A DNA stretch of 64,000 bases from positions 124,001 through 188,000 of IMG/VR virus record IMGVR_UViG_3300027754_000034, one strand, 5' to 3'. Every line of letters begins with the position of its first letter. The first letter of the stretch is position 1. Positions 1,042 to 58,507 of this stretch are shown piece by piece. The notes below the pieces were generated by a model. It did not search any database. It worked only from the letters and a program-made list of their open reading frames with translations, and was not told the DNA's origin. Position numbers and translations under genes: made by a program.

Positions 1042-1347
1042 TCAGCTAATTCCCAAGCGGTCGGCTTCGGCTTGGGTCAAGCCCATCGAGACCATAACGA
1101 GCGACGCTTCCAACTCCCCCCGGACTGACCCGAATGCATTGAGAATGATCCGCGAACGGACGGACTGATGAAGGTCGTCGAACTTGGACCAAATGACGAA
1201 CAAGTGCGTACAACGCGGCCTCACTCGCCTAATCAATATAATGGGCTCTGGGTTGTCGGTGGGTTCTCGAAGCTCGGCTTCGAGAACCATTTGGAGTTCT
1301 GGCTCCTCGGGTAGGGGGGTATATATCAGGTGGTCTCGGACTGGCAT
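1042..1347 (-). CDS. BolA-like small protein
   Basis: VIWSKFDDL..SVRSRII..A...MGLTxxE pattern; GGAG RBS; GC-richer than flanks. Confidence 0.35.
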   Translation of the reverse strand: MPVRDHLIYTPLPEEPELQMVLEAELREPTDNPEPIILIRRVRPRCTHLFVIWSKFDDLHQSVRSRIILNAFGSVRGELEASLVMVSMGLTQAEADRLGIS

Positions 1348-1932: not shown

Positions 1933-3234
1933 TCATGGCGCCTCGAGCGCGCGATCGATCACGGCGTCGCTCCACCTGAGCACGTGCTCGGGGTCGAAAC
2001 AGGCCGCCAGGGCTGCGGGTGTGAGAACCCGCACGACGTCGGGATCGGCCGCTAACAGCGTTTGAAACTCGCCATGCCCTTCGAACGAACGCATTGCCGA
2101 GCGTTGCACGACGACGTAGGCGTCCTGGCGCGCCATGCCCCTGCGGACGAGCTCGAGAAGCACGCCTTCGCTGTAACAGCGTCCGCCCGATAACTCGAGG
2201 TTTCGCAGCATCGTCTCCCCGTAAACGACGAGCCCTTCCGCGAGCCCTGCGGCACGCTCCAGCATGAAGCCGAGGGTTGCGATTGCGTCCGGCGCAATCA
2301 TTCTCTCGACGGACGAATGCGAGATGTCGCGCTCGTGCCAGAGGGCGACATTCTCAAGCGCCGGGATGACTGCCGCCCGCACGACACGCGCGAGGCCGCA
2401 CAGGTTTTCACTTAGGATTGGATTGCGCTTGTGAGGCATTGCGCTCGAGCCTTTTTGGCCGCAGGTGAACGCTTCCTCCGCCTCGGTGACTTCGGTGCGC
2501 TGCCAGTGTCGTACGTTCGTCGCGAGGCGCTCGATCCCTGCGGCTACGAGTGCGAGCGCGGCGAAGAAGGCTGCGTGACGGTCGCGTGCGACGACTTGGG
2601 TGGACACGGTCTCGGGGCGCAGGCCGAGGGTCTCGAGTGCTTTTGCCTCGAGTTCGGGTGAGAGGTGCGCGTAACTGCCGACCGCGCCGGCAAGCTTCCC
2701 GACTGCGATCTCGTCCCGCGCGATTCGCAGTCGATGGCGGCCCCGTTTCAGTTCGGCAAGGTGGCCTGCGAGCACCATGCCGAAACGCAGGGGTTCGGCG
2801 TGGATCCCGTGGCTGCGGCCGATGATCATCGTGTTGCGGTGCTCGTCCGTGCGCTTCGCGAGTGCGGCAATAAGGCGGTCCTGCCGCACGGCGAGGAGGT
2901 CACAGGACTGGACGAGGAGCATCGCGAAGCTCGTGTCGAGCACGTCGCTCGAGGTCATGCCGAAGTGGAGCCAGCGTGCGTCGCTTCCGGCGAGCTCTTC
3001 GACGTGCGTCAAAAATGCGATCACGTCGTGCTTCGTCGTGCGTTCGATCGCATCGATGCGCTCGGGATCGAGCTTGAGCTCTTTTGCGCGAATGTTGGCC
3101 ACGGTTCCAGCGGGGACGACGCCGGCTTCCTCCATGGCCTCACACGCGGCAAGCTCGACGGCCAACCAGGCTCGAAAACGGGTGAGCGGGGACCAAAGCT
3201 CCAGAAATTCGGCAGGAGTGTAGCGGGGGATCAT
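1933..3234 (-). CDS. purB: Adenylosuccinate lyase
   Basis: MIPRY start (ATG 3234), TKHDVIAF, HFGMTSSDV, GRSHGIHAEP, signature GSSAMPHKRNP, ERDISHSSVER; markedly GC-rich. Confidence 0.97.
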   Translation of the reverse strand: MIPRYTPAEFLELWSPLTRFRAWLAVELAACEAMEEAGVVPAGTVANIRAKELKLDPERIDAIERTTKHDVIAFLTHVEELAGSDARWLHFGMTSSDVLDTSFAMLLVQSCDLLAVRQDRLIAALAKRTDEHRNTMIIGRSHGIHAEPLRFGMVLAGHLAELKRGRHRLRIARDEIAVGKLAGAVGSYAHLSPELEAKALETLGLRPETVSTQVVARDRHAAFFAALALVAAGIERLATNVRHWQRTEVTEAEEAFTCGQKGSSAMPHKRNPILSENLCGLARVVRAAVIPALENVALWHERDISHSSVERMIAPDAIATLGFMLERAAGLAEGLVVYGETMLRNLELSGGRCYSEGVLLELVRRGMARQDAYVVVQRSAMRSFEGHGEFQTLLAADPDVVRVLTPAALAACFDPEHVLRWSDAVIDRALEAP

Positions 3235-3450: not shown

Positions 3451-4230
3451 TCACTTTAACGCTTCCCGGCACCACGACATTAGATCGCTCCAAGATTGAT
3501 CTGGATCGCTGTCGTATTCCACGACGCGCTGTAGCGCCGCTCTTGCCTCATCAAGCTCCGCTAGCGCCTCCAATTCGCGTTTCTCGGCGGCGCGTAACGC
3601 TTCGCGCATCTTCGCCATGGCGGTACCGAACTCGCTTTTTGCCGCATACCAGTCTCGCTCGTACTCGGCGGCTTTTGCTTTCGCATCGTCGCGTTCATTT
3701 TCGGCAGCGGCGGCTCGCGCGCCAAGCTCTCGGTAGCCGTCCAGCTTTTCGTTTGCGGCGCGCTCAACCATGAATGCGTAGTTGGCCCGCGCCTCGTCGC
3801 GCTCTTTTGTTAGGCGCTGGATCTCCTCCTCGTGCGCCACATTCAGCGTGTACGTCCCGGTCGGCGCGAGGCGATGCAGTTGCTCAAGTTCTTTGTGTAA
3901 CTCGTCGCGCTCTGCCCGAGCCGCACGCGCGTCGGCGCGTAGGTTACGAATGGCGTTTTCGACGTGCATCGCCGCGTGCAGGTAGCTCGTGTCGCTCCAG
4001 CCAAACTCACTGACGAGCATATGCACCAGCGTGTCGCGCTCTGCTTTCAGCGAAACGAGTTTCACCGTCGCTTCGGCAAGACGCTTTGCCATACGACCGA
4101 CTTCGCTTTCGAGTGAGCGGACGTCGGCGAGTAGCATCAATTCGACTTCCTCACTCATCTTCGGCTCCATGCATCGCGCTCGCGAGCCGCCCTCCAGCTC
4201 GGTACGCCTCGACAGCGTGAAGCAACGCAC
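3451..4230 (-). CDS. Coiled-coil phage protein (probable start near 4158, MSEEVEL)
   Basis: Repeated ERDEARA/ERDDAKA heptads; part of the GC-rich island. Confidence 0.6.
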   Translation of the reverse strand: MRCFTLSRRTELEGGSRARCMEPKMSEEVELMLLADVRSLESEVGRMAKRLAEATVKLVSLKAERDTLVHMLVSEFGWSDTSYLHAAMHVENAIRNLRADARAARAERDELHKELEQLHRLAPTGTYTLNVAHEEEIQRLTKERDEARANYAFMVERAANEKLDGYRELGARAAAAENERDDAKAKAAEYERDWYAAKSEFGTAMAKMREALRAAEKRELEALAELDEARAALQRVVEYDSDPDQSWSDLMSWCREALK

Positions 4231-6287: not shown

Positions 6288-6974
6288 TCAGAATTTCAGG
6301 CCAGGCTGCGCTCGGCTGACTGCCTGGACGAGGATGGTTCGAATCTCATCAGGAGCTTGGGTTTCCTGCTGCTCGAAATCATCACGGGTAGTGACCTTAG
6401 TGTCGACCTCGAAGAGCGCCTCCATAGCGCTATCCAAGGCTTCACCCTGCAGACCCAACTCAGAGAAGATATTACGAACCATCCCCTCCGCATCTGGACG
6501 CAGCTTCTTAGTCACGTCGAACTTGAAGAGCCGCTCATTCCAACCACCGAGAGCGTCCCGATTGTTCAACACCACATCACGGGCCACCGAGTATTTGTTG
6601 GAGCAGATGACGCTCACGTACTTGGTTTCGGGACCCTCGGGAGTCTCTACTGAGTAGGGTACTCCAACCGTTGTGACATTAGCCTTGTAAGTGTCGTTAT
6701 AAACCTTGCGCTTATCACGACCATAATCGCGAAGCTCTGCCTGCACGATTTCGAAATCGGACTGGGCACGCTCCAAAGCTTCTTTGAGTTTCGCCCCGTA
6801 GGCTGCTTTCTCATGGAAGTTCGGGTCTTGGCCCAGCTTCACTGTCGCCTTATCCCGCTTAGCCCCTGCAATCGCAGGGTCGGTCACTTGGATCGTCAGA
6901 CTCGGGGCCTGGGGAGCGGGCTTCTTCTGTGCGAGGTTACGGAGGGCTTCAATAGCAGAGGTCTTGTTTTCCAT
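6288..6974 (-). CDS. Conserved-looking phage protein of unknown function
   Basis: 228 aa, GGAG RBS, promoter motif upstream (7105), terminator downstream. Confidence 0.7.
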   Translation of the reverse strand: MENKTSAIEALRNLAQKKPAPQAPSLTIQVTDPAIAGAKRDKATVKLGQDPNFHEKAAYGAKLKEALERAQSDFEIVQAELRDYGRDKRKVYNDTYKANVTTVGVPYSVETPEGPETKYVSVICSNKYSVARDVVLNNRDALGGWNERLFKFDVTKKLRPDAEGMVRNIFSELGLQGEALDSAMEALFEVDTKVTTRDDFEQQETQAPDEIRTILVQAVSRAQPGLKF

Positions 6975-9151: not shown

Positions 9152-9967
9152 TCAGCCACCGCTCATCCCACCAAACCACTCTGGGGTGATTTTGTGGGAC
9201 CCCTTCGGCGTCTTGATGTAGAGTCCATTGTAAAACTCCACCAAGAGCTGAGCCAAGAACAAACGGTGCTTCTTAGGTACGATAGTCGCCTTCTTCGGGT
9301 ATCTCGTCATATGAACACCATCTTGGCCCCTCAGACGGTTCCAGAAGGACCAGCTGAAATCGGCCTTCTTGATCCACATACCGTAGGACTCCGGGTTATC
9401 GGTAAGCTCGTAAAGCTCCACCGCCGAGATTGACTCTCGGAGAGCTGATGCCAGCTTCTCATATCCGAGTGCCCCTATGGCGTCGGTGCAAGCCGCATGC
9501 ACCGGGGTGCGACGATTGAGAGAAGCCGTACGGGTTAAGCCGTTGACGAGGCCACGATTCCCCTTCGGCTTATACTTCTTGACGAGGTAGTCTACAAGCT
9601 CGGGGTACTCAGCCAAAGCCATCATGGCCTCAACATCATCCTTGGGTTCCACTTCCTCCTTGTAACCCTTCTTGGAGCATATAGGGCCGATACCCCGCTC
9701 AACAGACTCCGAATCCGTGAGGGGTTGCCCACAATGGGCACATGAGGTGCAAATTCCCTCGAGCACTAGCTGGTAGCGGCTACCACCGCTGAAGTAGCTA
9801 CTCGCGACGGGGACCAGGACGGGTCCGGTCACGAGGGTCATCTGAGTCATGGGGGTAGCCTCTTCTGGCGTGGTGGTGGTGGTGCTTTCGATCGGAATTG
9901 TGTTCATGGGTACCTCATCATTAAACATTTCGTCCATCATATCAATAATGTTCTTCATTGCGCTCAT
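9152..9967 (-). CDS. DUF6011-like Zn-ribbon protein
   Basis: CAHCGQPLTDSESVERGIGPICSKK. Confidence 0.7.
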   Translation of the reverse strand: MSAMKNIIDMMDEMFNDEVPMNTIPIESTTTTTPEEATPMTQMTLVTGPVLVPVASSYFSGGSRYQLVLEGICTSCAHCGQPLTDSESVERGIGPICSKKGYKEEVEPKDDVEAMMALAEYPELVDYLVKKYKPKGNRGLVNGLTRTASLNRRTPVHAACTDAIGALGYEKLASALRESISAVELYELTDNPESYGMWIKKADFSWSFWNRLRGQDGVHMTRYPKKATIVPKKHRLFLAQLLVEFYNGLYIKTPKGSHKITPEWFGGMSGG

Positions 9968-17859: not shown

Positions 17860-19341
17860 TTACTGCCGGGTAGGATTGAGCTGAACTACCCGACCGAAGT
17901 TCGGCTTAAAATGCCGCTTATTCGTGATAATCCACAGGCAATCCGCTCCCCTCGGCATCAGATTAATCGGGACTTCACCACAATCTCCATCGGTCAGAAT
18001 GATCACTAGATCAATCTTGTCACCAAATTTCTGCTTCGGCAGATCCTGGAAGAACTCGGTAAATACCGTGCCTCCACGACCCACCACCTGCGTACGCTCC
18101 AAAGAAGTCTTGCCGCTAACCCGAGTCGCTTTATCCCAATAGGGGACCGCATCACATGGCACGATCCAACCTTCAGCGACATCCGCCACCAATTGAAGCT
18201 CCTTCACCCCGTTCGCAATATCGTCATCCGACATTGACCCGGAGGTGTCCATCAAACAAACCCACCTAGGGAGGAAGTCGTGCTTCTTGGGTGTGTAGAG
18301 CTGATGCTTTGGGACGAATTTCCCATTCTCGTCCTTCGAGTAGATGTAGCTCGGACGACGGCGGAATCGCTTCCAGTCATTAATGTTTCCGGCATTCGCC
18401 TTCTTCTGTGCAATAGCCATTCGGATGATATCTCGTGCCGAGAGTTCTGGCTTCTTGAGTCGACCCAATGCCTGTTCGATACCCTCCGGTACCTCTCCAC
18501 GACCCATGGCACGGGTCTGGTCAGCAGCCCTCATCATATCCCCAAAGGTCTCCTCCTTGGTTTGGGAGGGAGGCATATGAGAATCGAGAGACCCCGGTCC
18601 ATCACAACAACCGGGCTTAGCCCCGCACTTCTGGCAACATTCTGGTCCCCAGGGCTGCGGGATTGTGCTCTGACCAGTCTTCGGGTCAAGAGACATGGCA
18701 CCGCAACCTCCTGCGTGCTCCTTGCAACGACGAGGGGAGTTCATTTGAGCCTTGCGGATCTGCTCGTAGATGGACTCCGGGCTTCGCCCGTAGACCGTGA
18801 CGTCTGCAAAGCATCCGGGTTGGGGGAGGTCATCCCGCGTTCCACCAATCCACTCCAAGTACATTTGGAGCGAAATCGGAGTTCCGAGCGGACCTGTCCA
18901 GATCTTCGGGAATTTCTGGTTCCGACCGGACTTCTCGTGCTCGGTCTCGATCGTGGCGTTCACCACGTAATCGACCGAGATGTTCCAGCATTGTCCGTCC
19001 AGACCACCGGCCCGTTCGGGGGAACAGTGGAAGAAGAGTACATGGTAGCTCTCGTGAGACATGACGGTCGTCACCTCTTCGGGAGACAGGGATTCCAGGA
19101 ACTCGGGGTTCCAATAGTATTCCTTACCGTTCGTGGCTGCTGTCTTGATTTCTTGTCCCCCGAGCTGCTTCGCCAGCTTATGGGGTTTAGGACCACTGAG
19201 GGCGAACAGGAAGGGATTTCCCCCTCCTGACGGCTGCCGGAACATCCTGGTTAAACATGAATTGATTTTATCCTGACAGTCCTGCAACTGTCGGGGGCTT
19301 GAGGCCACATTGTACGGATCAGCCAGTCGTGTGTATTGCAT
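17860..19341 (-). CDS. DUF2201-type metallopeptidase-VWA protein (MoxR partner)
   Basis: TAATNG, HESYH (HExxH), DYVVN, MIDAS DTSGS, GRGGT, ILTDG. Confidence 0.88.
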   Translation of the reverse strand: MQYTRLADPYNVASSPRQLQDCQDKINSCLTRMFRQPSGGGNPFLFALSGPKPHKLAKQLGGQEIKTAATNGKEYYWNPEFLESLSPEEVTTVMSHESYHVLFFHCSPERAGGLDGQCWNISVDYVVNATIETEHEKSGRNQKFPKIWTGPLGTPISLQMYLEWIGGTRDDLPQPGCFADVTVYGRSPESIYEQIRKAQMNSPRRCKEHAGGCGAMSLDPKTGQSTIPQPWGPECCQKCGAKPGCCDGPGSLDSHMPPSQTKEETFGDMMRAADQTRAMGRGEVPEGIEQALGRLKKPELSARDIIRMAIAQKKANAGNINDWKRFRRRPSYIYSKDENGKFVPKHQLYTPKKHDFLPRWVCLMDTSGSMSDDDIANGVKELQLVADVAEGWIVPCDAVPYWDKATRVSGKTSLERTQVVGRGGTVFTEFFQDLPKQKFGDKIDLVIILTDGDCGEVPINLMPRGADCLWIITNKRHFKPNFGRVVQLNPTRQ

Positions 19342-21492: not shown

Positions 21493-22593
21493 TCATTTCA
21501 AGACCTTCCGGACGGCCAGGTAGGTGGCCATTACGGATGGGATCTTCTGCATGCTGAAAGACTTTATCAAGTCCATGTTCAGCGCGGATTTCACCGCCGC
21601 GACCTGGAATTCAGTGGGGATTTCCTGCAACCAATTGAAGACATTGGTAGCTACCTTGTCGACGGATGCCTGGTGTTTCGTCTTATCCTTGAAGTCCGTT
21701 CGACGGCACTCCTGGGCAACGGCAGACACGGAGCCGATCGCGCAGACCAATTGCTTATCAATCGTCATCGTGTCCATGTTCGGCTTGGTCCCATCTGCCA
21801 CCAGCTTGTCGATGATAGGCTCGACGTGGCGGTAGTGGTCCAGCCAAACCCGGAACTTTACCGCAGCCTCACTCCCGACCCGGCCTGCAACCAGCATGGT
21901 CTGGAACTCGACCGAATCTTTGGACGTCGTCTGGTCCACTTCCCGAGCCGCCAGGCTCCAGGAGCGGGGAGACGGCCTGCAATAGGCAGTGGGGTCACCC
22001 TCAACCGAAGGACGGCTGAGGAATTCCTGATTCTTGCTCAGGAATCCGACCACAAGCGGATTTAGACCCGCGTCCTGTGCCCATTGCCTCCATGGTTCAA
22101 AGCTGTGTGTCAGCTTATACACCTTGCAACGGTTAGTCAGCGCGTGCGACACGGGCTGGCTGTGTGCCCCCTCGTCGGGTAGATTACCCGTTGCGATGAT
22201 GGCTTGAATCGAAAGCTTCGTCCCATTGAGGGTATGGGACTGGAACAACTCCAGGAGAGGATTCTGAAGCTCAGGCTTCGACTTGTCAACCTCATCCACG
22301 AGGAGGACCACCGGTCGATCCACCCTACCCTCAATGGGTAGGAAACGGGGTCGAGCATAGTCCACGCTCTGGTCCTCGGTGATGATGGGGAGACCGAGCA
22401 AATCCGGTGCTTCAAGCACCGACAAGTTCAGGTAGTACACCCCAAACCCCTCTGCCTCAGCGGCTTGGACCGCCATTTCGGTCTTGCCGATCCCCGCCTG
22501 ACCGAAAACCATGAGGTTTCCACCCGTTCGGACATTGAAGCGTAGAACCTCGGCGTAGGTATCCTGGGTGATTTCGACAACATTGGTGAGCAT
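21493..22593 (-). CDS. MoxR-like AAA+ ATPase
   Basis: Walker A GQAGIGKT, DLLGLP, Walker B LLVDEVD, ATGN, ALTNR, PSPRSW. Confidence 0.92.
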   Translation of the reverse strand: MLTNVVEITQDTYAEVLRFNVRTGGNLMVFGQAGIGKTEMAVQAAEAEGFGVYYLNLSVLEAPDLLGLPIITEDQSVDYARPRFLPIEGRVDRPVVLLVDEVDKSKPELQNPLLELFQSHTLNGTKLSIQAIIATGNLPDEGAHSQPVSHALTNRCKVYKLTHSFEPWRQWAQDAGLNPLVVGFLSKNQEFLSRPSVEGDPTAYCRPSPRSWSLAAREVDQTTSKDSVEFQTMLVAGRVGSEAAVKFRVWLDHYRHVEPIIDKLVADGTKPNMDTMTIDKQLVCAIGSVSAVAQECRRTDFKDKTKHQASVDKVATNVFNWLQEIPTEFQVAAVKSALNMDLIKSFSMQKIPSVMATYLAVRKVLK

Positions 22594-38279: not shown

Positions 38280-38891
38280 TCAGATCTCGGGGGAGATCAC
38301 CCGGGCCTGGTCTCGAAGCGCGGGATCAGCTGCCATCAGCTGGTCTCGAACCACGACCAAGGTGGCCTTGCTGTAACGTGTGCCCACCAATGTTGCGTAA
38401 CCAAGCATCCCATGCTTGGTGGTTGCAAACCGGATCCCATCGGCCTTGAGCTGCCCGAGTGGCTTGCCATCCTTGTCCGTTGGGACCTTTAGATCTCCCT
38501 CCCAGGCCTTCTCGAAGGCCTGGGCCGGTTCCTCACCAGCGGTGGTGAGTGCCTCGAAGGAGGCCATGATTTGGGAGGCGATGCCAGTGCTCGCGAGAGC
38601 GTGGCTCGACATGAACCCCCTCCGGTTCTTACTTGTGGTCTCTTTCGAGGCCACCTCGTCTTGTGTCTGGAGGAGGAAGGTCAAGAGGAAGACGCAGCGC
38701 GCGGCGGCATCGTCGTTCGAGACTCTGTGCCGCAATTCTTCGACCCCGATGAAGGGCCACTGGCGGAAGCCAGGGGAAGGGACCTTGATCTGGACGAGGT
38801 TGTTGATGAGCATGGAAATGGTCTTGATGTTGTTGTTCACGGTCGGCTCCAATGCAGGTGAAGGTGAAATGTCCGAAAGCGGCACCTGCAA
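38280..38891 (-). CDS. First gene after the tandem promoters; unknown function (likely GTG start at 38840)
   Basis: GC-rich coding bias, GGAG RBS before GTG, hairpin after stop. Confidence 0.65.
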   Translation of the reverse strand: MQVPLSDISPSPALEPTVNNNIKTISMLINNLVQIKVPSPGFRQWPFIGVEELRHRVSNDDAAARCVFLLTFLLQTQDEVASKETTSKNRRGFMSSHALASTGIASQIMASFEALTTAGEEPAQAFEKAWEGDLKVPTDKDGKPLGQLKADGIRFATTKHGMLGYATLVGTRYSKATLVVVRDQLMAADPALRDQARVISPEI

Positions 38892-38904
38892 GCCGCTCTC
38901 GCAT

Positions 38905-39112
38905 CAGGAGGACGCAGCGCCCGGTGCAGCTGTCGCTGCGACCGGATCACCGCTCCCTCACACAAGGAGGACGCAGCGCCCGGTGCAGCTGTCGCTGCGA
39001 CCGGATCACCGCTCCCTCACACAAGGAGGACGCAGCGCCCGGGGCAGCTGTCGCTGCGACCGGATCACCCCGTCTCCCTCACAAGGAGGACGCAGCGCCC
39101 GGGGCAGCTGTC
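38905..39112 (-). repeat. Four tandem 59-60 bp repeats, each carrying the promoter motif
   Basis: aggaggacgcagcgcccgg[t/g]gcagctgtc with ggacg at 38910, 38969, 39028, 39088. Confidence 0.9.
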
Positions 39113-39121
39113 ACCCAGTGA

Positions 39122-39250
39122 CAATCTCCATCCCCCTATATATATAGGGGGATGGAGATTGGGTGAAAATTGGTATACCCCCCTATATATATAGGGGGAT
39201 GGAGATTGGGTGAAAATTGGTATACCCCCATATGTATAGGGGGGATGGGG
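39122..39250. repeat. 40-bp perfect palindrome plus ~46-bp direct repeats
   Basis: caatctccatccccctatat|atatagggggatggagattg; ccccctatatatataggggg recurs at about 39178. Confidence 0.85.
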
Positions 39251-40120: not shown

Positions 40121-40528
40121 TCAAGTCATTTGTTCCAACATATCTTGAGCCTTATCGGACATCTCACCTTTACCTTTACCTTTACCTTTTTTCTGGTCTC
40201 TACGGTTTACCTTTTTTAGCTCTTTCTTTTCCTGGTTCACTTGAGTAGTAGTCATTACCGTATTTTGGCTAGGTCGAGCCATATTTTTACATAACGGACA
40301 ATATACACCAGAAGTCTTCACGGTATCCAGGTACACTTGGAAATCAGCGTTACATTTTTCACATTTATAATCCCACAATTTCATAGCAAGTCTTTTTGAC
40401 GTCGCATTCCTAAAATTGTAAGTTTTACCAAGTAACTCGATAGAACGTCGAAATTCATCCATACAAAGGCTCACCATTAAGGGTGTAACCTTCCGAATGG
40501 ATTTAACCGAACACTTCATTCGGACCAT
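40121..40528 (-). CDS. FmdB-like zinc-ribbon protein (true start probably MKLWDYKC)
   Basis: YKCEKC...F...CPLC. Confidence 0.5.
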   Translation of the reverse strand: MVRMKCSVKSIRKVTPLMVSLCMDEFRRSIELLGKTYNFRNATSKRLAMKLWDYKCEKCNADFQVYLDTVKTSGVYCPLCKNMARPSQNTVMTTTQVNQEKKELKKVNRRDQKKGKGKGKGEMSDKAQDMLEQMT

Positions 40529-42179
40529 TCCTGATTCACATGAGTACCAAGAACGTTTAAAATTAGAACTTTCTTGGTTTCGGGGTAGCGCGGCTGAACC
40601 TTATTTATTAACCGTCGCCCAAATATGCAGAGCAACAGTCGATATACCTCGAATTATTCGCGGATCAGCAGGTTCCAGTCTTGTCGTCTACGCCCTCGGG
40701 ATTTCAGACATTGATCCCGTTCATTGGAACATTGAGCCAGAACGGTTCTTCCATCCCCGACGACATTCTCTTCCCGATATCGATTTAGACTTCCCCGACA
40801 ATCGTCGTGACGAAGTCTTCGAACGCATCTACAATTTATTTCCCGGAAGAGCAGCTCGAATCTCTAATCATTCTCAATTTTCCGACGCCGGGTCCATTCG
40901 ACAAGCCGTTCGGTTTCTCGGTTATCGACACCATTTACCCAGTAAATTCCTTCTTTCCGACGTCGTTCCCGGTCTTGAATCTCGCGCCGTCGAAATCGCT
41001 TCAGAGTTACGACACCAAGTCTACAACATATCGCTTCATTGCGGCGGAGTCGTCGTTTTCGACCACCAGGTTCCACCACATCTTCTAACAGATTCCCCCC
41101 GACAAATTCGACTCGATAAGTTGGAAACCGAACATCATCAATTTATGAAAATCGACATTTTATCTAACATTTCGCTCACCCAACTCCACGCAATATCGGA
41201 CGCTCCCTTTTCCTCATATTCTGAAAAGGACGAACTCACATCCCGTCTCTTATCTAGCGGGCGTTCTCTCGGCATCACTCAAGCGGAGTCTCCCGCTTTC
41301 CAGAAGCTCCTTCGAGCACTTCGTCCTAATTCTCTTCCAGACGTCGTTCTCGCTATGGCTCTCATTCGTCCAGCATCCGCTTGGCGAGCCCACAGGCGCG
41401 ATTTTCTTAATCAGTGGCATCAAAATAGAAGAACTTCTCTCATGGTTTATGAGGACGACGCTACGCAGGTAATATCACGCCTCACAGGTTTACCAGGTCC
41501 TGAATCCGATGAAATTCGCCGCGCCTTTATAAATCGTCATCTGGAAATAACCAAAACATTAAGAGACAAATTAGAATTAACAGAAGAAGGTAACGGGATA
41601 ATCCAGGATATAGAGGCTTTTCGCACATTTTCAATGTGCAAGTCTCATTCAGTATCTTACGGGCGAGTTGTATGGGCACTCGCATATCATAAAGCCCACA
41701 ACCCCTCCGCTTTTTGGTTATCCACCATCAACCATGCAAAGTCCATGTGGCGTGATTGGGTGCACATTGAAGAAGCGAAACTGTCAGGACTCGACATAAA
41801 GCCGGGGAAAAAACCCTTCATCCTATCCGGTTCTACTTTATATCCTTCGGGATATACACCAACACTTTTCCTTCCGGATCCCCTTTGGGAGCTTAAAACT
41901 TACGGGATGTGGTCCGGCAATACGTTTCCAGCCGGATGTGGTCACAGTTATGATGAGACTCGAATCTCTTTCAAAGGAATAATCGGTACTTCTCGAATTT
42001 TAAAATCAAAAGATGGAGACGCCACTACATTTGTTACCATTGGGACTTCTCCCGGCGTATACCGCGATCTAATCTTAGAGGGAGCGATCGATACGACTCG
42101 CCGGAACTTTATCGAAGGTACCGGGGATTCGTATGTAACAAATGGGAGTGAATCTGTTAAAGTAACTCATTACGAGTTA

Positions 42180-42185
<6 letters not shown>
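40497..42185 (+). CDS. dnaE: Minimal C-family DNA polymerase (DnaE alpha-like, lacking PHP domain)
   Basis: [49 protein letters not shown]. Confidence 0.88.
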
Positions 42186-46452: not shown

Positions 46453-47106
46453 AAATACGCTCCATCAGAATGTCTAAACCCCAAAGAATGGTTCGAAAAG
46501 GCATTCCAGTTCGGTCATGAATATTATGGTTCAGAAATAACTAGAGCTAGTGCAGTAGATTTTAAAAAGGTTTCCCCCAGTTTATTCTTCTCAGAATATA
46601 TCTGGGTAGTTCATGCGACAGGCTTTTCAGCAAAAGCAGTTAGTAAATTTATCGAACGTCTGTCGAAAGCATATGGGGAGTATGATACACTAAGCCAAAA
46701 ATCCATAGAAGAGGCACTAATGATAGTAACTCCTGTCGTGAATAACCCTCCTAAAATTAGAGCCATATGGGAGACATCAAAATTACTTAATCATGGCATT
46801 ATACTTATGGGTTGGGAGGAGTTCAAAAATACTAAATTAAACGACCTAGAAAAACTGCAATCACTTCCATATATAGGAAAAGTAACTAAATATCATTTAG
46901 GCAGAAATATTGGAATGTTAGATTGTGTAAAACCAGATTTACACTTAGTGAGATTGAGGAAAAAATTCGGGTACGAATCTGAAATAGAAATGATAAGAGA
47001 TATGTCTATGGGTCACGAATTACCACTAGGAATCGCTGATATGATTGCTTGGTACTATGCTTCTACCTTTGGAACCAGCCATATGAAAAATAAAGGAGAC
47101 CGATAA
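46417..47106 (+). CDS. HhH-GPD DNA-glycosylase-fold protein
   Basis: LQSLPYIGKVT HhH; KPDLHLVRL. Confidence 0.75.
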   Translation: MERHTTLDQNYHKYAPSECLNPKEWFEKAFQFGHEYYGSEITRASAVDFKKVSPSLFFSEYIWVVHATGFSAKAVSKFIERLSKAYGEYDTLSQKSIEEALMIVTPVVNNPPKIRAIWETSKLLNHGIILMGWEEFKNTKLNDLEKLQSLPYIGKVTKYHLGRNIGMLDCVKPDLHLVRLRKKFGYESEIEMIRDMSMGHELPLGIADMIAWYYASTFGTSHMKNKGDR

Positions 47107-47915
47107 TGAATTATATTTTTGGAATATCTGGATTCGCAGGTATTGGTAAAGATGAATTTTGTAGAAGACTTGTGTCGAATTACGGGGCAACGCATATTGG
47201 ACTCATAGATCCAGGTAAAAGAACATTGCACGAAATATATGGATTCTCGGAAAAACAGTTATTTGGTCCTTCGAAGTATAGGAATTACGGTGACTTGAGA
47301 TATCCTAAAGCGCCATTTTTTGAGGAGAAACTCATTAGAACGAACATCAAGAATGAAACAGGCAAACACTTTTGGGTTAAATCTCTAAATTCCCATATCG
47401 ACAGTCAAGACTGTATTTCAGAAGGAGACCCAAAGTACTGGCTATCTCCTAGAGAAGCATTACAACAAGTGGGGGAACTTTTAAATAATTTATATCAAAA
47501 TACTTGGATAGATTTAGGATTGAAGACCCATCAAGTATTAGCTGAGGGAGGATATAAATATTCTAGAATGGAAGGGTTAAAAAAAGATAATTCAATACCA
47601 AAACCGAAGACATTCATTTCCTGTTTTTCAGATTTTAGACATCATAATGAAATTCATGCTACTAGAAAATTAGAATCTGCGGATTTGAAGACTATTTTAA
47701 TAAGAATTAAATCCTGTAAAATTCCGCAACCACAACATGATCATAAATCTGAGATAGAACAAACGACTATTCCAGATTCACATTTCGATTTTATCATTCA
47801 AAATGACGGTACTCTAATGTTATACCATGAAATGATAGATAAAATATTATATGAAGTATTTAATACTAATCATCTGGAATCTCCTGAATCATCAATGATC
47901 AATGGAAGTACTTAG
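47106..47915 (+). CDS. Deoxynucleoside monophosphate kinase (T4 gp1-like)
   Basis: GISGFAGIGKD, PREALQQVG, SDFR..NE, HKSE, IQNDGT. Confidence 0.88.
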   Translation: MNYIFGISGFAGIGKDEFCRRLVSNYGATHIGLIDPGKRTLHEIYGFSEKQLFGPSKYRNYGDLRYPKAPFFEEKLIRTNIKNETGKHFWVKSLNSHIDSQDCISEGDPKYWLSPREALQQVGELLNNLYQNTWIDLGLKTHQVLAEGGYKYSRMEGLKKDNSIPKPKTFISCFSDFRHHNEIHATRKLESADLKTILIRIKSCKIPQPQHDHKSEIEQTTIPDSHFDFIIQNDGTLMLYHEMIDKILYEVFNTNHLESPESSMINGST

Positions 47916-49115: not shown

Positions 49116-50423
49116 ATGATCACCTATTTCGTCTGGGGAGATCGCGTTGCACCACTGCATTAATTCAGGAAATTTATTATTTACTTCTTCAAACATTTTA
49201 AATGCTATTCTTCTATATGAAATATGACCTTGAGGCTTAGTTCTCAATTCAGTGATATAATATAACTCCGCTAGGTCCATCTTAAATATACTACGATGTA
49301 AATAACCCATGGGAATGATGTACTGGTATATGTCATTGTCATGAATTACTGTGTCTTCTTCGTAATTCAATAACTGATCCATAACGTTCCTATATTTTTC
49401 CTCCAGGGGTGTGTTAACAAAGTCATCCGGCACTGAGTACCCATAGTATGTAGTTAAAGGTTCAGGAAATTGTTCACACCTTCGATGTCTTTGTAAGTCT
49501 CTATATGCCCCATAATCCATTATTATCTCTAATGTGAAATCTACTAATCTAAATATTTCAACAGTTCTTCTATTTCCTCTTTTATTCATCAGTGTATTCA
49601 ATTCCCCCCATTCCATACCATATATGCTCTTTGCATATTTCTTCATTTTCTCGAAGGACTTAAGGTCGCAATTTAGTATCTTTACTGATTCTTTATCTTT
49701 TACAAAATAATCTGGTATGATCGCCTTCAACCTTGGTTCAAAATTATCTGGTTCAATTCCCCCCAATAATGAAGGACATAATTCCGAAGCACATTTTAAA
49801 ACCTCTGCACCTATGGTTCGTATCTCCGGATTTTTATGCCCTAAAGCCTCCGATATCAAATATCTTAAATCCCTAAGATTTATTACGCAAGCCAAGTTGG
49901 TTCCTGTTCCAGCTGGTAATAAGTATCTAAGACTATCAAAAGCCCTGGCTTTTACTCTATTTTCATTAATGTCTTGAGTTCCAATGAGGCATGCTGCTCT
50001 ATCTAGAGCAGCATGATGCATTTCATCATACGCTTCATAATATCTTTTAGCAAAGTTCGTAAGTGTTGTATTACCAGGTAAGGGATTAATAAAACTATCC
50101 TTACTAAAATATTGATATCTGGTACTTTTCTCTGAATAGCCTGCTCTTTGATATTTTTCTATGAATTTAGATGCAATTATACTAATTCCTTCAAAGCAAA
50201 TAGGGATTACAGCTAGCTCTGCAACACTAGAATGACCATAACTTATAGTCCATTTAGAATGGAATTTATTCGCTTCTTCGTTAGTTAACGTGTTTATTAT
50301 ATCCTTTGCAGATAAGGACGACCTAGAATACTTAGCAAGAGTAGTGGCTTGAATGGAAGGAGGTAATAAATTTCCATCCTTAGATTTAAGAACATATATA
50401 TCCATAAAGAATCCTACATTCAT
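49110..50423 (-). CDS. thyX: FAD-dependent thymidylate synthase, tandem-domain type
   Basis: YGHSSVAE, SEKSTRY, RYLLP, RDLQRHR, ELRT..QGH..YR. Confidence 0.9.
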   Translation of the reverse strand: MNVGFFMDIYVLKSKDGNLLPPSIQATTLAKYSRSSLSAKDIINTLTNEEANKFHSKWTISYGHSSVAELAVIPICFEGISIIASKFIEKYQRAGYSEKSTRYQYFSKDSFINPLPGNTTLTNFAKRYYEAYDEMHHAALDRAACLIGTQDINENRVKARAFDSLRYLLPAGTGTNLACVINLRDLRYLISEALGHKNPEIRTIGAEVLKCASELCPSLLGGIEPDNFEPRLKAIIPDYFVKDKESVKILNCDLKSFEKMKKYAKSIYGMEWGELNTLMNKRGNRRTVEIFRLVDFTLEIIMDYGAYRDLQRHRRCEQFPEPLTTYYGYSVPDDFVNTPLEEKYRNVMDQLLNYEEDTVIHDNDIYQYIIPMGYLHRSIFKMDLAELYYITELRTKPQGHISYRRIAFKMFEEVNNKFPELMQWCNAISPDEIGDHL

Positions 50424-50455: not shown

Positions 50456-51025
50456 ATGCTGGAGATTACAAAAATGTTAAATGCGGAACTAATAGAGAGA
50501 ATATCTAAAACGAAAATAAATGTGAACCCTGAAGTTTATTCACATGAAATTCAAAAAGCTTTTCTACCATGGGATGTAGATTTATCTCCCTCTGCCTTAT
50601 ACGGGTGTAGTGTTGGATGCAGGAAGTCCATGGGAATTAAAACCCCAGAAGTAAAATGGATAAGTGTTAAAAGATGGGTGAATATAACACCAATGGGTGT
50701 TACCCTCCCACCAGGGTGTTATTTATCAATTAAAAGAAAAGAAACATTTGAAGCCACTCCGACACCCAAATTCATAAAACAAGATTTCGTTTTAGTATTA
50801 TTTCCACATGGGAATGTGTGGTCACAAAAAGAAGAAGATGATCCAATTACGGAAGAATGGTTATGGTCAGAAGAAAACGGAAAAACCATCTTCGAAATGC
50901 TCATAAATAAGGATTATGACAGACCGATATCTGGATATTTTTCTTCCTGCTATGGATATATGAAGAAAAATCCTGAACAAATCGGAATACACCTAAAGAG
51001 AAAGAAAAATCTCACTAAGGTGTGA
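50456..51025 (+). CDS. Hypothetical protein
   Basis: ORF track. Confidence 0.55.
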   Translation: MLEITKMLNAELIERISKTKINVNPEVYSHEIQKAFLPWDVDLSPSALYGCSVGCRKSMGIKTPEVKWISVKRWVNITPMGVTLPPGCYLSIKRKETFEATPTPKFIKQDFVLVLFPHGNVWSQKEEDDPITEEWLWSEENGKTIFEMLINKDYDRPISGYFSSCYGYMKKNPEQIGIHLKRKKNLTKV

Positions 51026-54991: not shown

Positions 54992-56515
54992 ATGATTGAG
55001 TTTTTAGATTCTGAATTTACTCTTAGAGAGTTTGGTTATTCAGTTCCTAAAAGATCAGATGATAAATGCTATGCCAAATGCTCACTTGGGAATCATTCTG
55101 TAATAACCACGTTAAGAGCTTTGAAGAGAACTCTTAAGAAGCGTGGGTTATATAGATGTTCTAAGTGCGTTTCTAACTCAGAAGAAGGCAAGCGACACCG
55201 ATCTTTGCAGGCCATTACTTTATGGTCTAATCCAGAAATAGCAAGTTTGATATCTGAAAAATCTAAGGAGTTAGCGAATAGCGAGAAGGGAAGAGCACAA
55301 CGTTCTCTTCAATCAAAGAAGGCGTGGGAGTCAGAACCCTATTCCAGAGTTCAAAAAGACCGAATCGCTAGTTTATTTAAGTCAGAAGAACATCGTAAAT
55401 TAGTATCTGAACGGAATAAAAAGGATTACCAAGAAAATCCTATTAAATATATTGAAGATAAAGTATCCGCGATGTGGTCGGATGCTGCAAAGAAAAAACA
55501 TAAAGAAGCTCTGGCTAGTCCCGAATATAGAGAAACTCACCGCCAGTTAGCCAAAACCAGGTTTGAAAACGATGAGTATAAAGAAAAAATAGCTAAGGGA
55601 CTAGAAAACTTTCCTCGTGGTGGGAAGATGTCCACGCCGGAAAAGCAGGTAAAAGATATTTTAGAAGCTCTTGTACTAGAGTATGTTTATAACAAGGCGG
55701 TAGGCCCTTATAACTTTGACTTCTATATCGAAAAACTTAACCTATATGTTGAGGTACAAGGTGAATATTGGCACAGTCTACCAAATAACGAAAGACGAGA
55801 TCGGGCTAAGTTTTCATACCTAAGAATGGCTTTTCCAGAAGCCAAATTAATTTATCTGTGGGATTATGATTTTAACTCCGGAAACGCTGAATATAAAATT
55901 CGAGAAGCATTAGGGTTATCCCTTAATTCAGCAATCGAGTTTAAGTTCTCAGAATGTTCATTGAGAACAGTTAATTCAACTGAGGCTAAGCCGTTTCTTA
56001 ACAGCTGGCATTACGCGCAATATGGAAAGGCTGCTAAATTTCTCTATGGTGTTTATTTAAACGAGTTATTAATATCAGTTTGCAAAATTGGTCCGGTGAG
56101 CCGTAAAGAAGTCGCTTCGTCAGAAGGATTCACTCCTAAAGAATGCTTCGAACTTGATAGGTTCTGCATTCACCCTTTTTATCATAAGAAAAACCTCGGG
56201 TCTTTTCTATTGAGCCGATCGGTAAAAACTTTCTTTAATGAATTTCCGCAATCTAAAGCATTAGTTAGCTTTTCTGATTCTACCTTCGGGCATGAGGGAA
56301 CTATTTATCGAGCTAGTAATTGGACGGAAGTCAGAAAAGTAAAACCTGATTACATTTATGTGGCTTCTGATGGATGGATTTTACATAAGAAAACCCTATA
56401 TAATCAAGCCGTTTCGGTACATATGACCGAAACGGCTTATGCTTCTAAGCATGGTTATAAAAAAGTATTCGGAAAAGAAAAAACGAAATTCATCACCAAA
56501 CGCTCATGTCGATAA
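54992..56515 (+). CDS. Fusion: helical repeats, DUF559/Vsr-like endonuclease and Mom-like (GNAT) domain
   Basis: S.PE...FDFYI...VEVQGEYWH...RD..K; FL..WHY, ELDRFC, SFLLSRS, LVSFSD...GHEGTIYRASNW. Confidence 0.78.
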   Translation: MIEFLDSEFTLREFGYSVPKRSDDKCYAKCSLGNHSVITTLRALKRTLKKRGLYRCSKCVSNSEEGKRHRSLQAITLWSNPEIASLISEKSKELANSEKGRAQRSLQSKKAWESEPYSRVQKDRIASLFKSEEHRKLVSERNKKDYQENPIKYIEDKVSAMWSDAAKKKHKEALASPEYRETHRQLAKTRFENDEYKEKIAKGLENFPRGGKMSTPEKQVKDILEALVLEYVYNKAVGPYNFDFYIEKLNLYVEVQGEYWHSLPNNERRDRAKFSYLRMAFPEAKLIYLWDYDFNSGNAEYKIREALGLSLNSAIEFKFSECSLRTVNSTEAKPFLNSWHYAQYGKAAKFLYGVYLNELLISVCKIGPVSRKEVASSEGFTPKECFELDRFCIHPFYHKKNLGSFLLSRSVKTFFNEFPQSKALVSFSDSTFGHEGTIYRASNWTEVRKVKPDYIYVASDGWILHKKTLYNQAVSVHMTETAYASKHGYKKVFGKEKTKFITKRSCR

Positions 56516-57710
56516 TATCATCATGAACTGCCCCTGTTCCTATTAGGATAACAGGCACCCCAGCAGTTTCTTCTACTTTGTTAATGAAATCGCGGGATTC
56601 TTTAGAAAGACTCTTTAGAGCCTCCTTTCCTCCACGAATCCCATTATCATTCCAGTTTAGATATTGAACGAAGTTCACCGAGATCTTGGTAACCCCGTTT
56701 ACGCGAACGGCGTCTTCCAAGCCTATCCAAGAAAATGTAGAAACTCGTCGAATACGTTTTGTAACTGTTGTACGCTCGCGTTCTGCTAGTTTTTCTGCCT
56801 CTTCTTTAGGCATTCCCGCGTTTTTTGCTACTTGATCCCAGGTCAGCTCTTTACAATCATCGTAAAAGCCTCCTGAATACCCCTTCTGCTCTCCGTCATC
56901 CTCCACCACATTGCCTACGCGGATTGGGTAGGAGCGAAGATTCAGCCAAACATCACCCAGCATACTGGGAGGTACCGCCATGTAGTCCATAGCGGCTTGC
57001 AGGGTGCAGTTCCGACTCGTGCAGAATGGATAATGAGACCCATGGTCTATTGACAGTGCATAACCTTGGCTTCCTTCATGGAGCCAAGTATTACCTTCAT
57101 TAATCAATGAATGCGTGAGATTCCGAAATTCCATGGCAGACACCACCTGAATTTTCTCAAGTGCTTCTGCAATCCCGTTTTCTCCAATATATTTTTGGCA
57201 TTCCGAATCAGATGAAAGCAAGTCTGAGAACACATCTTCTAACTTGCGAGAAGCCACCACTGAGGCGTTTGGCTTTCGAAGAATCTTATCAGACAAAGCC
57301 GTTCCTGATCCCTGCATCGTGGAGGCAATGTGTTTGGTGGACTCCATACCATCTCGCTCACGAGAGGCATGTTCATCTGTCACATAAAGAGCTCGATCAT
57401 GAATGAAGAGACGAGGATTGCCACATTCATGCCATTCCTTCAAAAGCTGCTTCGGGGCAAATCCGGAACCTGGGCTTACAAATCCCACCATTCCAATCCC
57501 ATTCACCTTCTTAAGGATCAGAGCCGTTGGAATGGCCTTGGATACGAATTTTGTTCCATCTGCAAATATGGCGGAGTGACCGGCATTCGGAAGATTCGCG
57601 GAGGAGACGTTCACCACCCCATATTTATCAGCCAGGTATGTTGATATCTTTCCTTTCCCACTCGATCCCCACGCCTGATCCAAAATTACGTTAAATTTAC
57701 CGTTCTTCAA
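56493..57710 (-). CDS. purZ: PurZ-like 2-aminodeoxyadenylosuccinate synthetase (PurA paralog)
   Basis: WGSSGKGK (Ser where PurA has catalytic Asp13), PNAGH, EGSQG, YPIRVG (Ile, not Thr), TTVTK, NFVQY (not TKLD); TTG start with GGAGG. Confidence 0.8.
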   Translation of the reverse strand: MKNGKFNVILDQAWGSSGKGKISTYLADKYGVVNVSSANLPNAGHSAIFADGTKFVSKAIPTALILKKVNGIGMVGFVSPGSGFAPKQLLKEWHECGNPRLFIHDRALYVTDEHASRERDGMESTKHIASTMQGSGTALSDKILRKPNASVVASRKLEDVFSDLLSSDSECQKYIGENGIAEALEKIQVVSAMEFRNLTHSLINEGNTWLHEGSQGYALSIDHGSHYPFCTSRNCTLQAAMDYMAVPPSMLGDVWLNLRSYPIRVGNVVEDDGEQKGYSGGFYDDCKELTWDQVAKNAGMPKEEAEKLAERERTTVTKRIRRVSTFSWIGLEDAVRVNGVTKISVNFVQYLNWNDNGIRGGKEALKSLSKESRDFINKVEETAGVPVILIGTGAVHDDIIDMSVW

Positions 57711-57739
57711 TGCAACCTCCGTGTTTAGAGACTATACAT

Positions 57740-58507
57740 TCAGTCTTTATCTTCAATATCATTTTTAACCGGCTTTAAATCCGAAATCAGAATTTCCGAT
57801 TCAACGCCCGAAACTCTATATAAGGTAGTTTTTTCGTATATCTTATCAAGATCTTTTTTCTCTACATATCTGGCTAGACTTCTACGAGGGTCATTTTTAA
57901 AATGACCCAAGGCAAATATTCGGGCACCCGCTAGTTGTTTAAAAGTGAATTCTCTCCCTTCTAATTTAAATTCTTTTCTTTTATGGTATCTATTTAGTTC
58001 TCTTACCTTCAAATGCCTTCTGAGAGAACGTTCACTCACGAACATCACTCGAATGGAAATGTCACTAGGTATTTTCTTAAATAATCTTAAGGAAATTCTC
58101 AAAGCATAATCGCATGCTAATGCAAAAGCATCTTGATATGAATTGGCCCTAATTAAGACACTCGCCATTCCGAAAGATTCATGCAATATGACTCGCCAGA
58201 TTTTCATATCGGGGTCTATACTTTCACCCACCAGCCTTCTAAGGGTATTTATTTTGTAATCAGGGAATGCTAATTTTTGAGCAGCATCAAATATCTGATC
58301 AAATTTAGTTTTCCCTGATTTTGCAGGATGAATCGGAATCTCTTCTAAAATACTATAATGTATAGCATTGTTTTTTATTAGTTCCGTGAGCACTTCCCTG
58401 AAGTATTCTTCATCCTTTTTACCAGACATTCTAAATATGCATTTTTCTATCGCTTCCAGGGCCTCTTCAGATAAAGGATCAACAGAACGAATTTTGGGAC
58501 TACTCAT
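57740..58507 (-). CDS. Hypothetical protein
   Basis: 255-aa ORF upstream of purZ. Confidence 0.6.
   Translation of the reverse strand: MSSPKIRSVDPLSEEALEAIEKCIFRMSGKKDEEYFREVLTELIKNNAIHYSILEEIPIHPAKSGKTKFDQIFDAAQKLAFPDYKINTLRRLVGESIDPDMKIWRVILHESFGMASVLIRANSYQDAFALACDYALRISLRLFKKIPSDISIRVMFVSERSLRRHLKVRELNRYHKRKEFKLEGREFTFKQLAGARIFALGHFKNDPRRSLARYVEKKDLDKIYEKTTLYRVSGVESEILISDLKPVKNDIEDKD

Follow-up and report, generated by a model that had tools for sequence, protein, structure and literature searches.

The 405-amino acid open reading frame at positions 56493-57710 (minus strand) of the 64,000-nucleotide stretch analysed here (positions 124,001 to 188,000 of the IMG/VR record IMGVR_UViG_3300027754_000034, hereafter the window) is an intact adenylosuccinate synthetase homologue carried by a 257-kb uncultivated phage (contig Ga0209596_1000003). 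It begins with a TTG codon at 57708-57710, and a GGAGG Shine-Dalgarno sequence was read directly from the DNA at 57716-57720, 5 nt upstream of this start. The protein matches Pfam PF00709 over residues 8-351 with an E-value of 2e-36, indicating that the resemblance is not due to chance, and it matches PHROG 1211 at E=6e-60, while its best match among solved structures is the phiVC8 PurZ (PDB 6FM1). The best NCBIfam model is that of PurZ (NF038379), but its score of 190.6 bits is below the curated cut-off of 300 and the archaeal-type PurA model (NF003295) scores nearly as well, at 173 bits. However, this cut-off is an annotation threshold of a narrow "exception" model built on canonical small-phage PurZ rather than a biochemical criterion. 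All 203 phage-database hits at E<=1e-5 are phages annotated with PurZ or PurA-like genes, the best being 33-36% identical. A megablast of 24 kb of the window against GenBank phages gave no match. Since the window contains many short ORFs, we also considered stop-codon recoding, but no reassignment resulted in a gain in ORF length.

The gene is surrounded by a nucleotide-synthesis module that is conserved in the clade of huge phages to which it belongs (hereafter clade A). A co-directional gene of 255 amino acids (c3, 57740-58507, minus strand) lies 29 nt upstream of the purZ-like gene and occupies the immediately upstream position in 19 of 24 clade-A loci. It had no Pfam or PHROG hit, and its AlphaFold2 model (pLDDT 68) had no Foldseek match. 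A second conserved neighbour (c24, 50456-51025, plus strand, 189 amino acids), found in 12 clade-A loci, lies between the purZ-like gene and thyX. It was modelled with a pLDDT of 84 and a pTM of 0.80, yet had no PDB match with E<0.28, such that it could possibly represent a new fold. When we asked whether c3 and c24 could be cryptic DatZ, MazZ or Dut proteins, profile comparisons with hhalign gave probabilities below 6% and the ESM Atlas gave no lead. The thyX gene itself (49110-50423, minus strand, 437 amino acids, PF02511 E=2e-35) encodes a ThyX-type thymidylate synthase and is also conserved next to the purZ-like gene in clade A. The 269-amino acid P-loop kinase at 47106-47915 (plus strand) resembles dNMP kinases on the basis of a single PHROG match (PHROG 139, E=4e-23). 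It had no Pfam or NCBIfam hit and no PDB match beyond the P-loop, in particular none to a solved dNMP kinase, although a relative showed a faint Pfam DNMK hit and a dNMP-kinase-like gene is conserved near the purZ-like gene across the clade.

Beside the purZ-like gene, a 507-amino acid ORF (54992-56515, plus strand) overlaps its 3′ end by 23 nt and combines HNH/Vsr-like and Mom-like segments (PF25680 Mom, E=8e-23; PHROG 559 and 3339). We considered whether this Mom-like neighbour could bear on adenine modification, but rejected this reading, since the ORF has the architecture of a mobile HNH homing-endonuclease family and is present next to the purZ-like gene only in the nearest relatives. It is probably a mobile homing endonuclease gene inserted beside the purZ-like gene. 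The replicase is of the DnaE type (Pol III alpha), as indicated by a 562-amino acid segment at 40497-42185 (plus strand; PF07733 and PF17657; positions 360-828 of the 1190 positions of the PHROG 405 profile), the same 564-aa gene being found in relatives, and is not a PolA-type DpoZ.

The purB gene (1933-3234) is on the minus strand and encodes an intact 433-amino acid adenylosuccinate lyase that scores 457.8 bits against TIGR00928 (cut-off 326.2). Its Met start at 3234 matches bacterial N-termini, and the catalytic signature SSAMPHKRN is found at residue 282 of the longer, 452-amino acid reading. The protein is 70-87% identical to Polyangiaceae/Sorangium PurB, the GC content of the gene is 65% in contrast to 35-50% for the window, its nearest relative lies in a bacterial context, and no other phage-like PurB appeared among the 120 best hits. 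These observations show a recent acquisition from a GC-rich, Polyangiaceae-like myxobacterial host that is restricted to this lineage, and we thus rejected the view of purB as a designed part of a conserved pathway.

When we compared the active site with solved PurZ structures and the published determinants, the PurZ state was found at each diagnostic position. A Ser replaces the catalytic Asp13 of PurA (WGSSGKGK; phiVC8 S14, S-2L S23), and YPIRVG replaces TRVG and is followed by a 19-residue PurZ-type insertion ending in SGGFYDD (SGGHYPD in phiVC8). The TTVT aspartate loop is present (TTVTKRIRR), and the nucleotide pocket reads NFVQY, aligning with NFCNY in phiVC8 (F295/Y298) and NFAQY in S-2L (N305/F306/Q308). 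This is the adenine-type pocket in place of the guanine-binding TKLD, whereas PurZ0 and PurA have TMLD or TKLD at this site. In an alignment of 218 family and reference sequences, Ser was found in 212, the Ile of PIRV in 214 and the Phe of the NF motif in 208, while the only Asp/Thr rows are four true PurA sequences, including that of the 735-kb phage LR756501. The effect of the insertion on 2′-OH selection is inferred.

A maximum likelihood tree of 99 sequences (IQ-TREE, LG+C20), in which no archaeal PurA was included, separated the Ser-type sequences from Asp-type PurA with 100/100 support and placed the window protein inside an 89-row clade of ATP-type PurZ (100/99) together with S-2L, phiVC8, DMU1 and Bm1, with PurZ0 falling outside. 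Grouping with Asp-type PurA, which would have spoken against a PurZ identity, was thus not observed. A search with the family alignment for archaeal sequences returned only 4 loci, none archaeal, and a search of a plasmid collection returned bacterial Ser-type fused homologues and ordinary PurA instead. The nearest starred clades of the tree include loci whose purZ-like gene sits beside DatZ-, MazZ- or dUTPase-like genes (our loci L067, L074, L092 and L098, and the sister pair L041/L050). The gene belongs to a large family of about 1,600 clusters on phage contigs of up to 436 kb, the complete clade-A genome IMGVR_UViG_3300032782_000001 being of this length. Probable inteins in several homologues and conservation at 60% identity or more across more than 100 clusters point to an important phage gene.

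We then examined the accessory genes within 10 kb of the purZ-like gene. DatZ was found in 11 of 18 canonical small Z-phage loci, while an intermediate clade (clade B) had NDT-like genes in 16 of 37 loci, plus DatZ-, MazZ- and Dut-like genes. Two basal clade-A members (L033 and L034) have an adjacent HD protein that keeps all the invariant DatZ residues. In contrast, 20 of 24 clade-A loci have none of these genes within 10 kb. In the window, Pfam scans of about 80 of the 94 ORFs of at least 60 amino acids and custom HMMs run on a six-frame translation found no DatZ, MazZ or DpoZ, and no DatZ, MazZ/DUF550, DUF5664, dUTPase-like or NDT-like gene and no PolA-type DpoZ was found in about 131 kb (about 51%, from about 95 to 227 kb of the contig) of the 257-kb genome. 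A single-protein query of IMG/VR for DatZ elsewhere in the huge-phage contigs returned only itself. On present evidence there is therefore no known way to keep dATP out of the DNA. The genome also encodes an intact Dam-like N6-adenine methyltransferase with a DPPY motif, which hints that adenine may be present in the DNA, although N6 also exists on Z (2-aminoadenine).

The observation made in an earlier note, which had recognized from the sequence alone a PurA homologue with PurZ-type substitutions, an intact purB and a dNMP kinase in a window without recognizable DatZ, MazZ or DpoZ, is confirmed, with the reservation that the kinase rests on one PHROG match. Its interpretation, that the phage may encode every step from dGMP to dZDP and would represent a new architecture, is only partly supported. 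The PurZ signature and tree position, the intact purB and the conserved dNMP-kinase-like gene bear it out, but a new, self-contained architecture is not supported, since purB is a recent, lineage-specific import, the kinase is assigned no substrate, and PurB-like lyases already co-occur with PurZ0 or PurA-like genes in the public records of the Z-phage Gordonia phage Ghobes and of Streptomyces phages Hiyaa, Galactica and Keanu. The note had also raised the Arg of TTVTKR as a caveat. This can be dropped, since canonical PurZ genes that sit beside DpoZ and DatZ (Bm1, BCSR129 and the environmental loci L078-L084, L094 and L095) also keep that Arg.

We consider it more likely than not that the ORF encodes a genuine PurZ-type enzyme in a huge phage that replicates with a DnaE-type polymerase, and that Z-DNA is plausible but unproven. 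In this view, the enzyme would condense dGMP with aspartate, using ATP or dATP as phosphate donor, to give N6-succino-2-amino-2′-deoxyadenylate, which the phage's own host-derived PurB would cleave to dZMP. The conserved dNMP-kinase-like protein, a candidate for the dZMP to dZDP step, and/or host kinases would raise it to dZTP, and the DnaE-type replicase would place Z opposite T. The gene is a core gene of a large clade of huge phages, a derived branch of the PurZ family that has lost, or never had, the adjacent DatZ/MazZ/DpoZ partners. Homology, the active-site signature, the tree position, the gene neighbourhoods and the origin of purB are established by our analysis, whereas substrate use, the role of the kinase and above all the presence of Z in virion DNA are inferences from sequence. 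The acquisition and retention of an intact PurB fits a demand for the lyase step, and would indicate that this step can limit the pathway, which is useful for engineering Z-DNA production.

The best surviving alternative, although unlikely, is that the enzyme uses dGMP and ATP but that the phage DNA is only partly Z-substituted or not at all, the product serving another purpose such as remodelling the nucleotide pool, draining dGMP or dATP, countering a defence system, or making a signalling or decoy nucleotide. The absence of dATP-exclusion partners and DpoZ from the half of the genome examined and from most clade-A neighbourhoods, the Dam-like methyltransferase, and published work showing that purZ needs DatZ/MazZ-type partners for efficient substitution all favour this view. 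However, the gene is a conserved core gene in a module with thyX, a dNMP kinase and RNR, as expected for DNA precursor supply, PurZ can itself consume dATP, and the conserved neighbours c3 and c24 could supply the missing function. It is very unlikely that the enzyme works on the ribonucleotide GMP to give 2-amino-AMP, with Z entering DNA through the phage ribonucleotide reductase, or entering RNA or cofactor pools. The Arg equivalent to E. coli R303, which contacts O2′ of IMP, is nearly invariant in the family, relatives encode an RNR near the gene and an ATP-cone protein lies downstream in this genome, but the same Arg is kept by canonical PurZ genes in DpoZ/DatZ clusters, and the insertion after RVG, which in S-2L and phiVC8 pushes the conserved Val against C2′, is present and even longer here. 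Least likely is an ordinary auxiliary PurA that, with PurB, converts IMP to AMP to boost adenine nucleotide supply during infection, since even though purA and purB make the canonical IMP-to-AMP branch, huge phages do carry true PurA genes (LR756501 has the GDEGKGK motif) and the archaeal-type PurA model gives the score noted above, the Ser at the Asp13 position in every family member, the adenine-type NFxQY in place of the TKLD/Asp333 motif, the nesting within PurZ and the restriction of the recent purB to this lineage speak against it.

Z-DNA is so far known only from small phages of about 40-80 kb that have PolA-type DpoZ or PrimPol polymerases and well-defined partner enzymes, and the clade described here has never been linked to it. 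A PurZ-type gene that is a core gene of hundreds of huge-phage lineages would greatly enlarge the known range of Z-DNA, imply that a DnaE-type replisome can copy Z:T DNA, and point to undiscovered enzymes for excluding dATP. It remains possible, although we put this forward only tentatively, that a whole, widespread clade of huge phages (contigs of 100-436 kb from lakes and other environments, some probably infecting myxobacteria) replaces adenine with 2-aminoadenine by means of a DnaE-type replicase and a so far unknown mechanism of dATP exclusion, which might involve the conserved proteins c3 and c24. These would be the first Z-genome jumbo phages and a third, independent accessory solution after DatZ/MazZ and DutZ/DmtZ.

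Compared with canonical ATP-type PurZ, with which it shares the fold, the family, the signature residues (the pocket being NF-x-(Q/N)-Y) and a strongly supported clade, the window protein is only 31-36% identical and has 405 rather than about 343-365 amino acids. It sits on a 257-kb genome with a DnaE-type replicase, where it is flanked not by datZ, mazZ or dpoZ but by conserved genes to which no function could be assigned, thyX and a dNMP-kinase-like gene. PurZ0, the GTP-using relative of Gordonia phages Archimedes (PDB 7VF6) and Ghobes and of Arthrobacter phage Wayne, also has Ser at the Asp13 position and PIRV, but it keeps the guanine-type (T/S)M(L/A)D pocket, lacks the long insertion and is only 25-28% identical. 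PurZ0 phages carry DutZ and DmtZ, neither of which was found here. The archaeal-type short PurA of Pyrococcus horikoshii (PDB 2D7U and 5K7X) is of a similar length class and aligns well over the C-terminal segment (residues 299-401), with a comparable score (102 bits in PDB), but it has GDEGKG, TRVG, TVTGRRRR and a TMLD guanine pocket where the window protein has the PurZ state. Finally, PurB-like lyases are encoded by Ghobes (gp36, alongside PurZ0, gp50), by the three Streptomyces phages and by the Microcystis jumbo phage MaAM05, while the PurB of the window is a full-length canonical PurB, a very recent host capture that is only 30-46% identical to these other phage copies.

The open reading frame described in the earlier note is present exactly at 56493..57710 on the minus strand, and all of the motifs listed for it were recovered, so the observation itself holds. 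The ORF is 405 aa long, starts with TTG, has a GGAGG ribosome-binding site 5 nt upstream, and is a clear adenylosuccinate-synthetase homologue (PF00709, E=2e-36). Among curated models the best match was the NCBIfam PurZ model (NF038379) at 190.6 bits, which is below its cut-off of 300, followed by the archaeal-type PurA model (NF003295) at 173 bits and by bacterial PurA at 141 bits or less. In PHROGs it was assigned to phrog_1211, the PurZ family (E=6e-60). The best solved structures were phiVC8 PurZ (6FM1, 124 bits), S-2L PurZ (7ODX, 102 bits) and Pyrococcus PurA (2D7U, 102 bits), while PurZ0 of phage Archimedes (7VF6) scored 56 bits. The accompanying purB gene is real but lies on the minus strand (1933..3234). 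It is intact, since it scores 458 bits against TIGR00928 (cut-off 326), its N-terminus matches bacterial PurB from the Met at 3234, and the SSAMPHKRN signature is present. In contrast, the gene that the note called a dNMP kinase (47106..47915) is supported by one PHROG match only.

When we compared the protein with the published determinants and with reference sequences of phiVC8, S-2L, DMU1, Bm1, BCSR129, Wayne, Archimedes and E. coli PurA, we found the PurZ state at every diagnostic site. The Asp13 position is occupied by Ser (GSSGKG, where PurA has GDEGKG), the TRVG motif of PurA is replaced by PIRVG, and RVG is followed by an insertion ending in SGGFYDD that corresponds to SGGHYPD in phiVC8 and is absent in PurA. 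The aspartate loop reads TTVTK, as in PurZ, and the NTP pocket reads N-F-V-Q-Y, corresponding to N305/F306/Q308 of S-2L and F295/Y298 of phiVC8, whereas PurA and PurZ0 have TKLD/TMLD. Across 218 aligned sequences, Ser was found in 212, the Ile of PIRV in 214 and the Phe of the pocket in 208, and the only Asp/Thr/Lys rows were the four genuine PurA sequences. One of these comes from the 735-kb uncultured phage LR756501.1 (about 345.3-346.3 kb; YGDEGKGK, TRVG, TKAD), which shows that huge phages can also carry true PurA and provides a useful contrast to the Ser-type genes of the window's clade. The note had raised as a caveat the Arg in TTVTKR, which is equivalent to E. coli R303. However, this residue is not diagnostic, since canonical PurZ genes embedded in DpoZ-PurZ-MazZ-DatZ clusters (Bm1, BCSR129 and the environmental loci L078-L084, L094 and L095) have the same Arg.

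The window is part of a huge phage, and it encodes a DnaE-type Pol III alpha segment, ThyX, an ATP-dependent DNA ligase, collagen-like tail fibres, a dCMP deaminase, HNH endonucleases and many ORFans. It corresponds to positions 124,001-188,000 of the 257,205-bp contig JGI 3300027754 Ga0209596_1000003 (IMGVR_UViG_3300027754_000034), and the same phage appears in two other samples. No near relative was found among GenBank phages by megablast of 24 kb of the window. The standard genetic code fits. The DnaE-type polymerase gene (40497..42185, plus strand) covers only the middle of the Pol III alpha profile (positions 360-828 of 1190) and is conserved as a 562-564-aa gene in relatives, so the replicase appears to be split into separate genes.

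The protein belongs to a very large family. At E<=1e-5 we found 1,597 clusters (90% identity), of which more than 100 are 60-85% identical to the query, on contigs of up to 428 kb. At 50% identity there were 224 clusters at E<1e-30, several with probable inteins. Several huge-phage homologues (proteins P0241, P0242, P0244, P0247, P0252 and others in this set) are 750-1200 aa long and match the query in 2-4 separate stretches, which suggests intein insertions in the gene. A scan of IMG/VR returned 79 loci, which we split by identity to the query into clade A (52% or more, contigs up to 436 kb), clade B (36-49%, many on contigs of 100-400 kb) and clade C (33-37%, canonical Z-phages of about 40 kb). 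In a 99-row maximum-likelihood tree (LG+C20+F+G4, 380 columns) rooted on Asp-type PurA, all Ser-type sequences form one group (100/100), plasmid-borne fused homologues and PurZ0 branch first, and a strongly supported clade (100/99) holds the canonical PurZ sequences together with clades B and A. The tree contained no archaeal PurA, whose exclusion rests on motifs and on published trees. The window protein sits in a 14-row clade-A group (99/96) inside a 41-row clade (100/94), which also contains the loci L067, L074 and L092 and the myxobacterial prophage copies L098 and L099.

The gene neighbourhoods differ among these clades. Clade C loci show the textbook arrangement of DpoZ, PurZ, MazZ and DatZ. 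In clade B, many purZ-like genes sit near an NDT-like gene (16 of 37 loci; PF05014, E=2e-5), a DUF1599 plus dUTPase fusion (L046, L074, L092, L098) or DatZ- and MazZ-like genes (L041, L050, L067), and these are the accessory types recently tied to Z synthesis. The basal clade-A members L033 and L034 have an adjacent HD protein with every invariant DatZ residue, which matches YfbR-like at E=1e-3 and our DatZ HMM at E=8e-3. In core clade A, which includes the window, the conserved module is different and reads c3 - purZ-like - c26 - c24 - thyX ... dNMP-kinase-like - DHH phosphoesterase (c3, c26 and c24 being our labels for conserved neighbouring genes), with clamp-loader and RNR genes lying further out. 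Neither c3 nor c24 showed similarity to DatZ, MazZ or Dut, and neither predicted structure had a match in the PDB. This holds even though the AlphaFold model of c24 (50456..51025, plus strand, 189 aa) is confident, with pLDDT 84 and pTM 0.80. Its best structural hit had E=0.28 and TM<0.2, and it may represent a new fold. We also observed, at 54992..56515 on the plus strand, a 507-aa ORF with a weak Vsr-like hit (E=0.009), whole-length HNH/homing-endonuclease PHROG matches and a C-terminal Mom-like domain, which overlaps the 3′ end of the purZ-like gene by 23 nt on the opposite strand. A homologous ORF lies next to purZ-like in 13 loci of clades A and B, which suggests a mobile element that targets the neighbourhood of this gene.

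When we walked along the contig and its near-identical counterparts, precomputed Pfam annotation was obtained for roughly 95-227 kb of the 257 kb. This stretch encodes a RecD2-like helicase, an ATP-cone protein, a Mre11-like phosphoesterase, a PD-(D/E)XK nuclease, a Toprim protein, a clamp loader, a 5′-3′ exonuclease, sigma factors and RuvB. It also encodes an intact Dam-like D12 N6-adenine DNA methyltransferase with KWAGGK and DPPY motifs, flanked by two HNH endonuclease genes, which lies outside the window at about 107.1-108.0 kb on the source contig (positions 1968-2795, minus strand, of our locus L115). No HD/YfbR, MazG/DUF550, DUF5664, dUTPase, NDT or PolA gene was found there, and our own HMMs for these families gave no hit on a six-frame translation of most of this stretch, that is, the window plus loci L109-L115. 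Thus the known means of excluding dATP are missing from the half of the genome that we examined, and the methyltransferase is mild evidence that adenine may be present.

The 120 best relatives of the window's purB are bacterial, mostly from Polyangiaceae and Sorangium, at 70-87% identity, and the closest, at 87%, lies among housekeeping genes of a bacterium. Its GC content is 65%, in a window of 35-50%. The gene is therefore a recent capture from the host, and it points to a myxobacterial host. The distribution of purZ-like genes in cellular genomes fits this assignment, since the only copies found on bona fide cellular genomes are prophage-like copies in Chondromyces apiculatus DSM 436 (contig18, L098) and Sorangium sp. 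So ce131 (9.76-Mb chromosome, L099), while the other two hits in that scan were phage-like contigs binned into MAGs. These two regions have a host-like GC content (0.65-0.67) and carry a purZ-like gene 43-44% identical to that of the window, directly followed in L098 by a DUF1599 plus dUTPase fusion gene. This would be a temperate or integrated element with a PurZ-type gene in myxobacteria. However, purB is not a clade-wide feature, and the pairing is not unprecedented. Gordonia phage Ghobes, a PurZ0 Z-phage, encodes gp36 'adenylosuccinate lyase' alongside gp50 PurZ0, the Streptomyces phages Hiyaa, Galactica and Keanu carry both PurA-like and PurB-like genes, and the Microcystis jumbo phage MaAM05 has a purB. 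The literature that we could search still describes the lyase and kinase steps as host functions, and it contains no paper linking PurZ to jumbo or huge phages.

Taken together, the protein is, with good confidence, a PurZ-type (dGMP/ATP-type) enzyme and not a PurA, and it is a core gene of a large clade of huge phages that descends from within the PurZ radiation. Homology, motifs, tree position, gene neighbourhoods and the origin of purB are shown by the analysis, whereas the use of dGMP and ATP is inferred from sequence, as any Z-DNA in these phages would be. On that last point the evidence is divided. The intact signature, the ancestry among Z-cluster genes, the position in a dNTP-supply module and the capture of purB all speak for it. 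Against it stand the lack of any known dATP-exclusion partner or Z-selective polymerase in the half of the genome examined, or of such genes in most clade-A neighbourhoods, and the presence of the Dam-like methyltransferase. The note's proposal of a self-contained pathway from dGMP onwards is only partly supported and is not architecturally new. The more interesting result is that PurZ is widespread in huge phages with a different, still unknown, accessory set.

GC content per gene ranges from 0.28 to 0.65 across the window. Besides purB, several genes (1042..1347, 3451..4230, 6288..6974, 9152..9967, 17860..19341, 21493..22593 and 38416..39147) have a GC content of 0.54-0.62 in an otherwise 0.28-0.50 GC window. 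They may be further recent imports from a GC-rich host, and most have no Pfam match.

The plasmid-borne 'adenylosuccinate synthetases' that branch basal to PurZ0+PurZ, rather than with PurA, have Ser at the Asp13 position (GSEGKG) and PIRVG. They were found on a Ralstonia solanacearum megaplasmid (L100, 2428-4143), a B. thailandensis plasmid (L101, 2428-4143), a Rhizobium plasmid (L102, 2455-4059) and a Sinorhizobium plasmid (L103, 292-1332). Three of the four (L100-L102, 534-571 aa) carry an N-terminal P-loop/AAA domain, while the Sinorhizobium copy is about 346 aa and is not fused. They sit beside AbiE toxin-antitoxin, SIR2, transposase and AAA ATPase genes, and may be a defence-island PurZ-like family.
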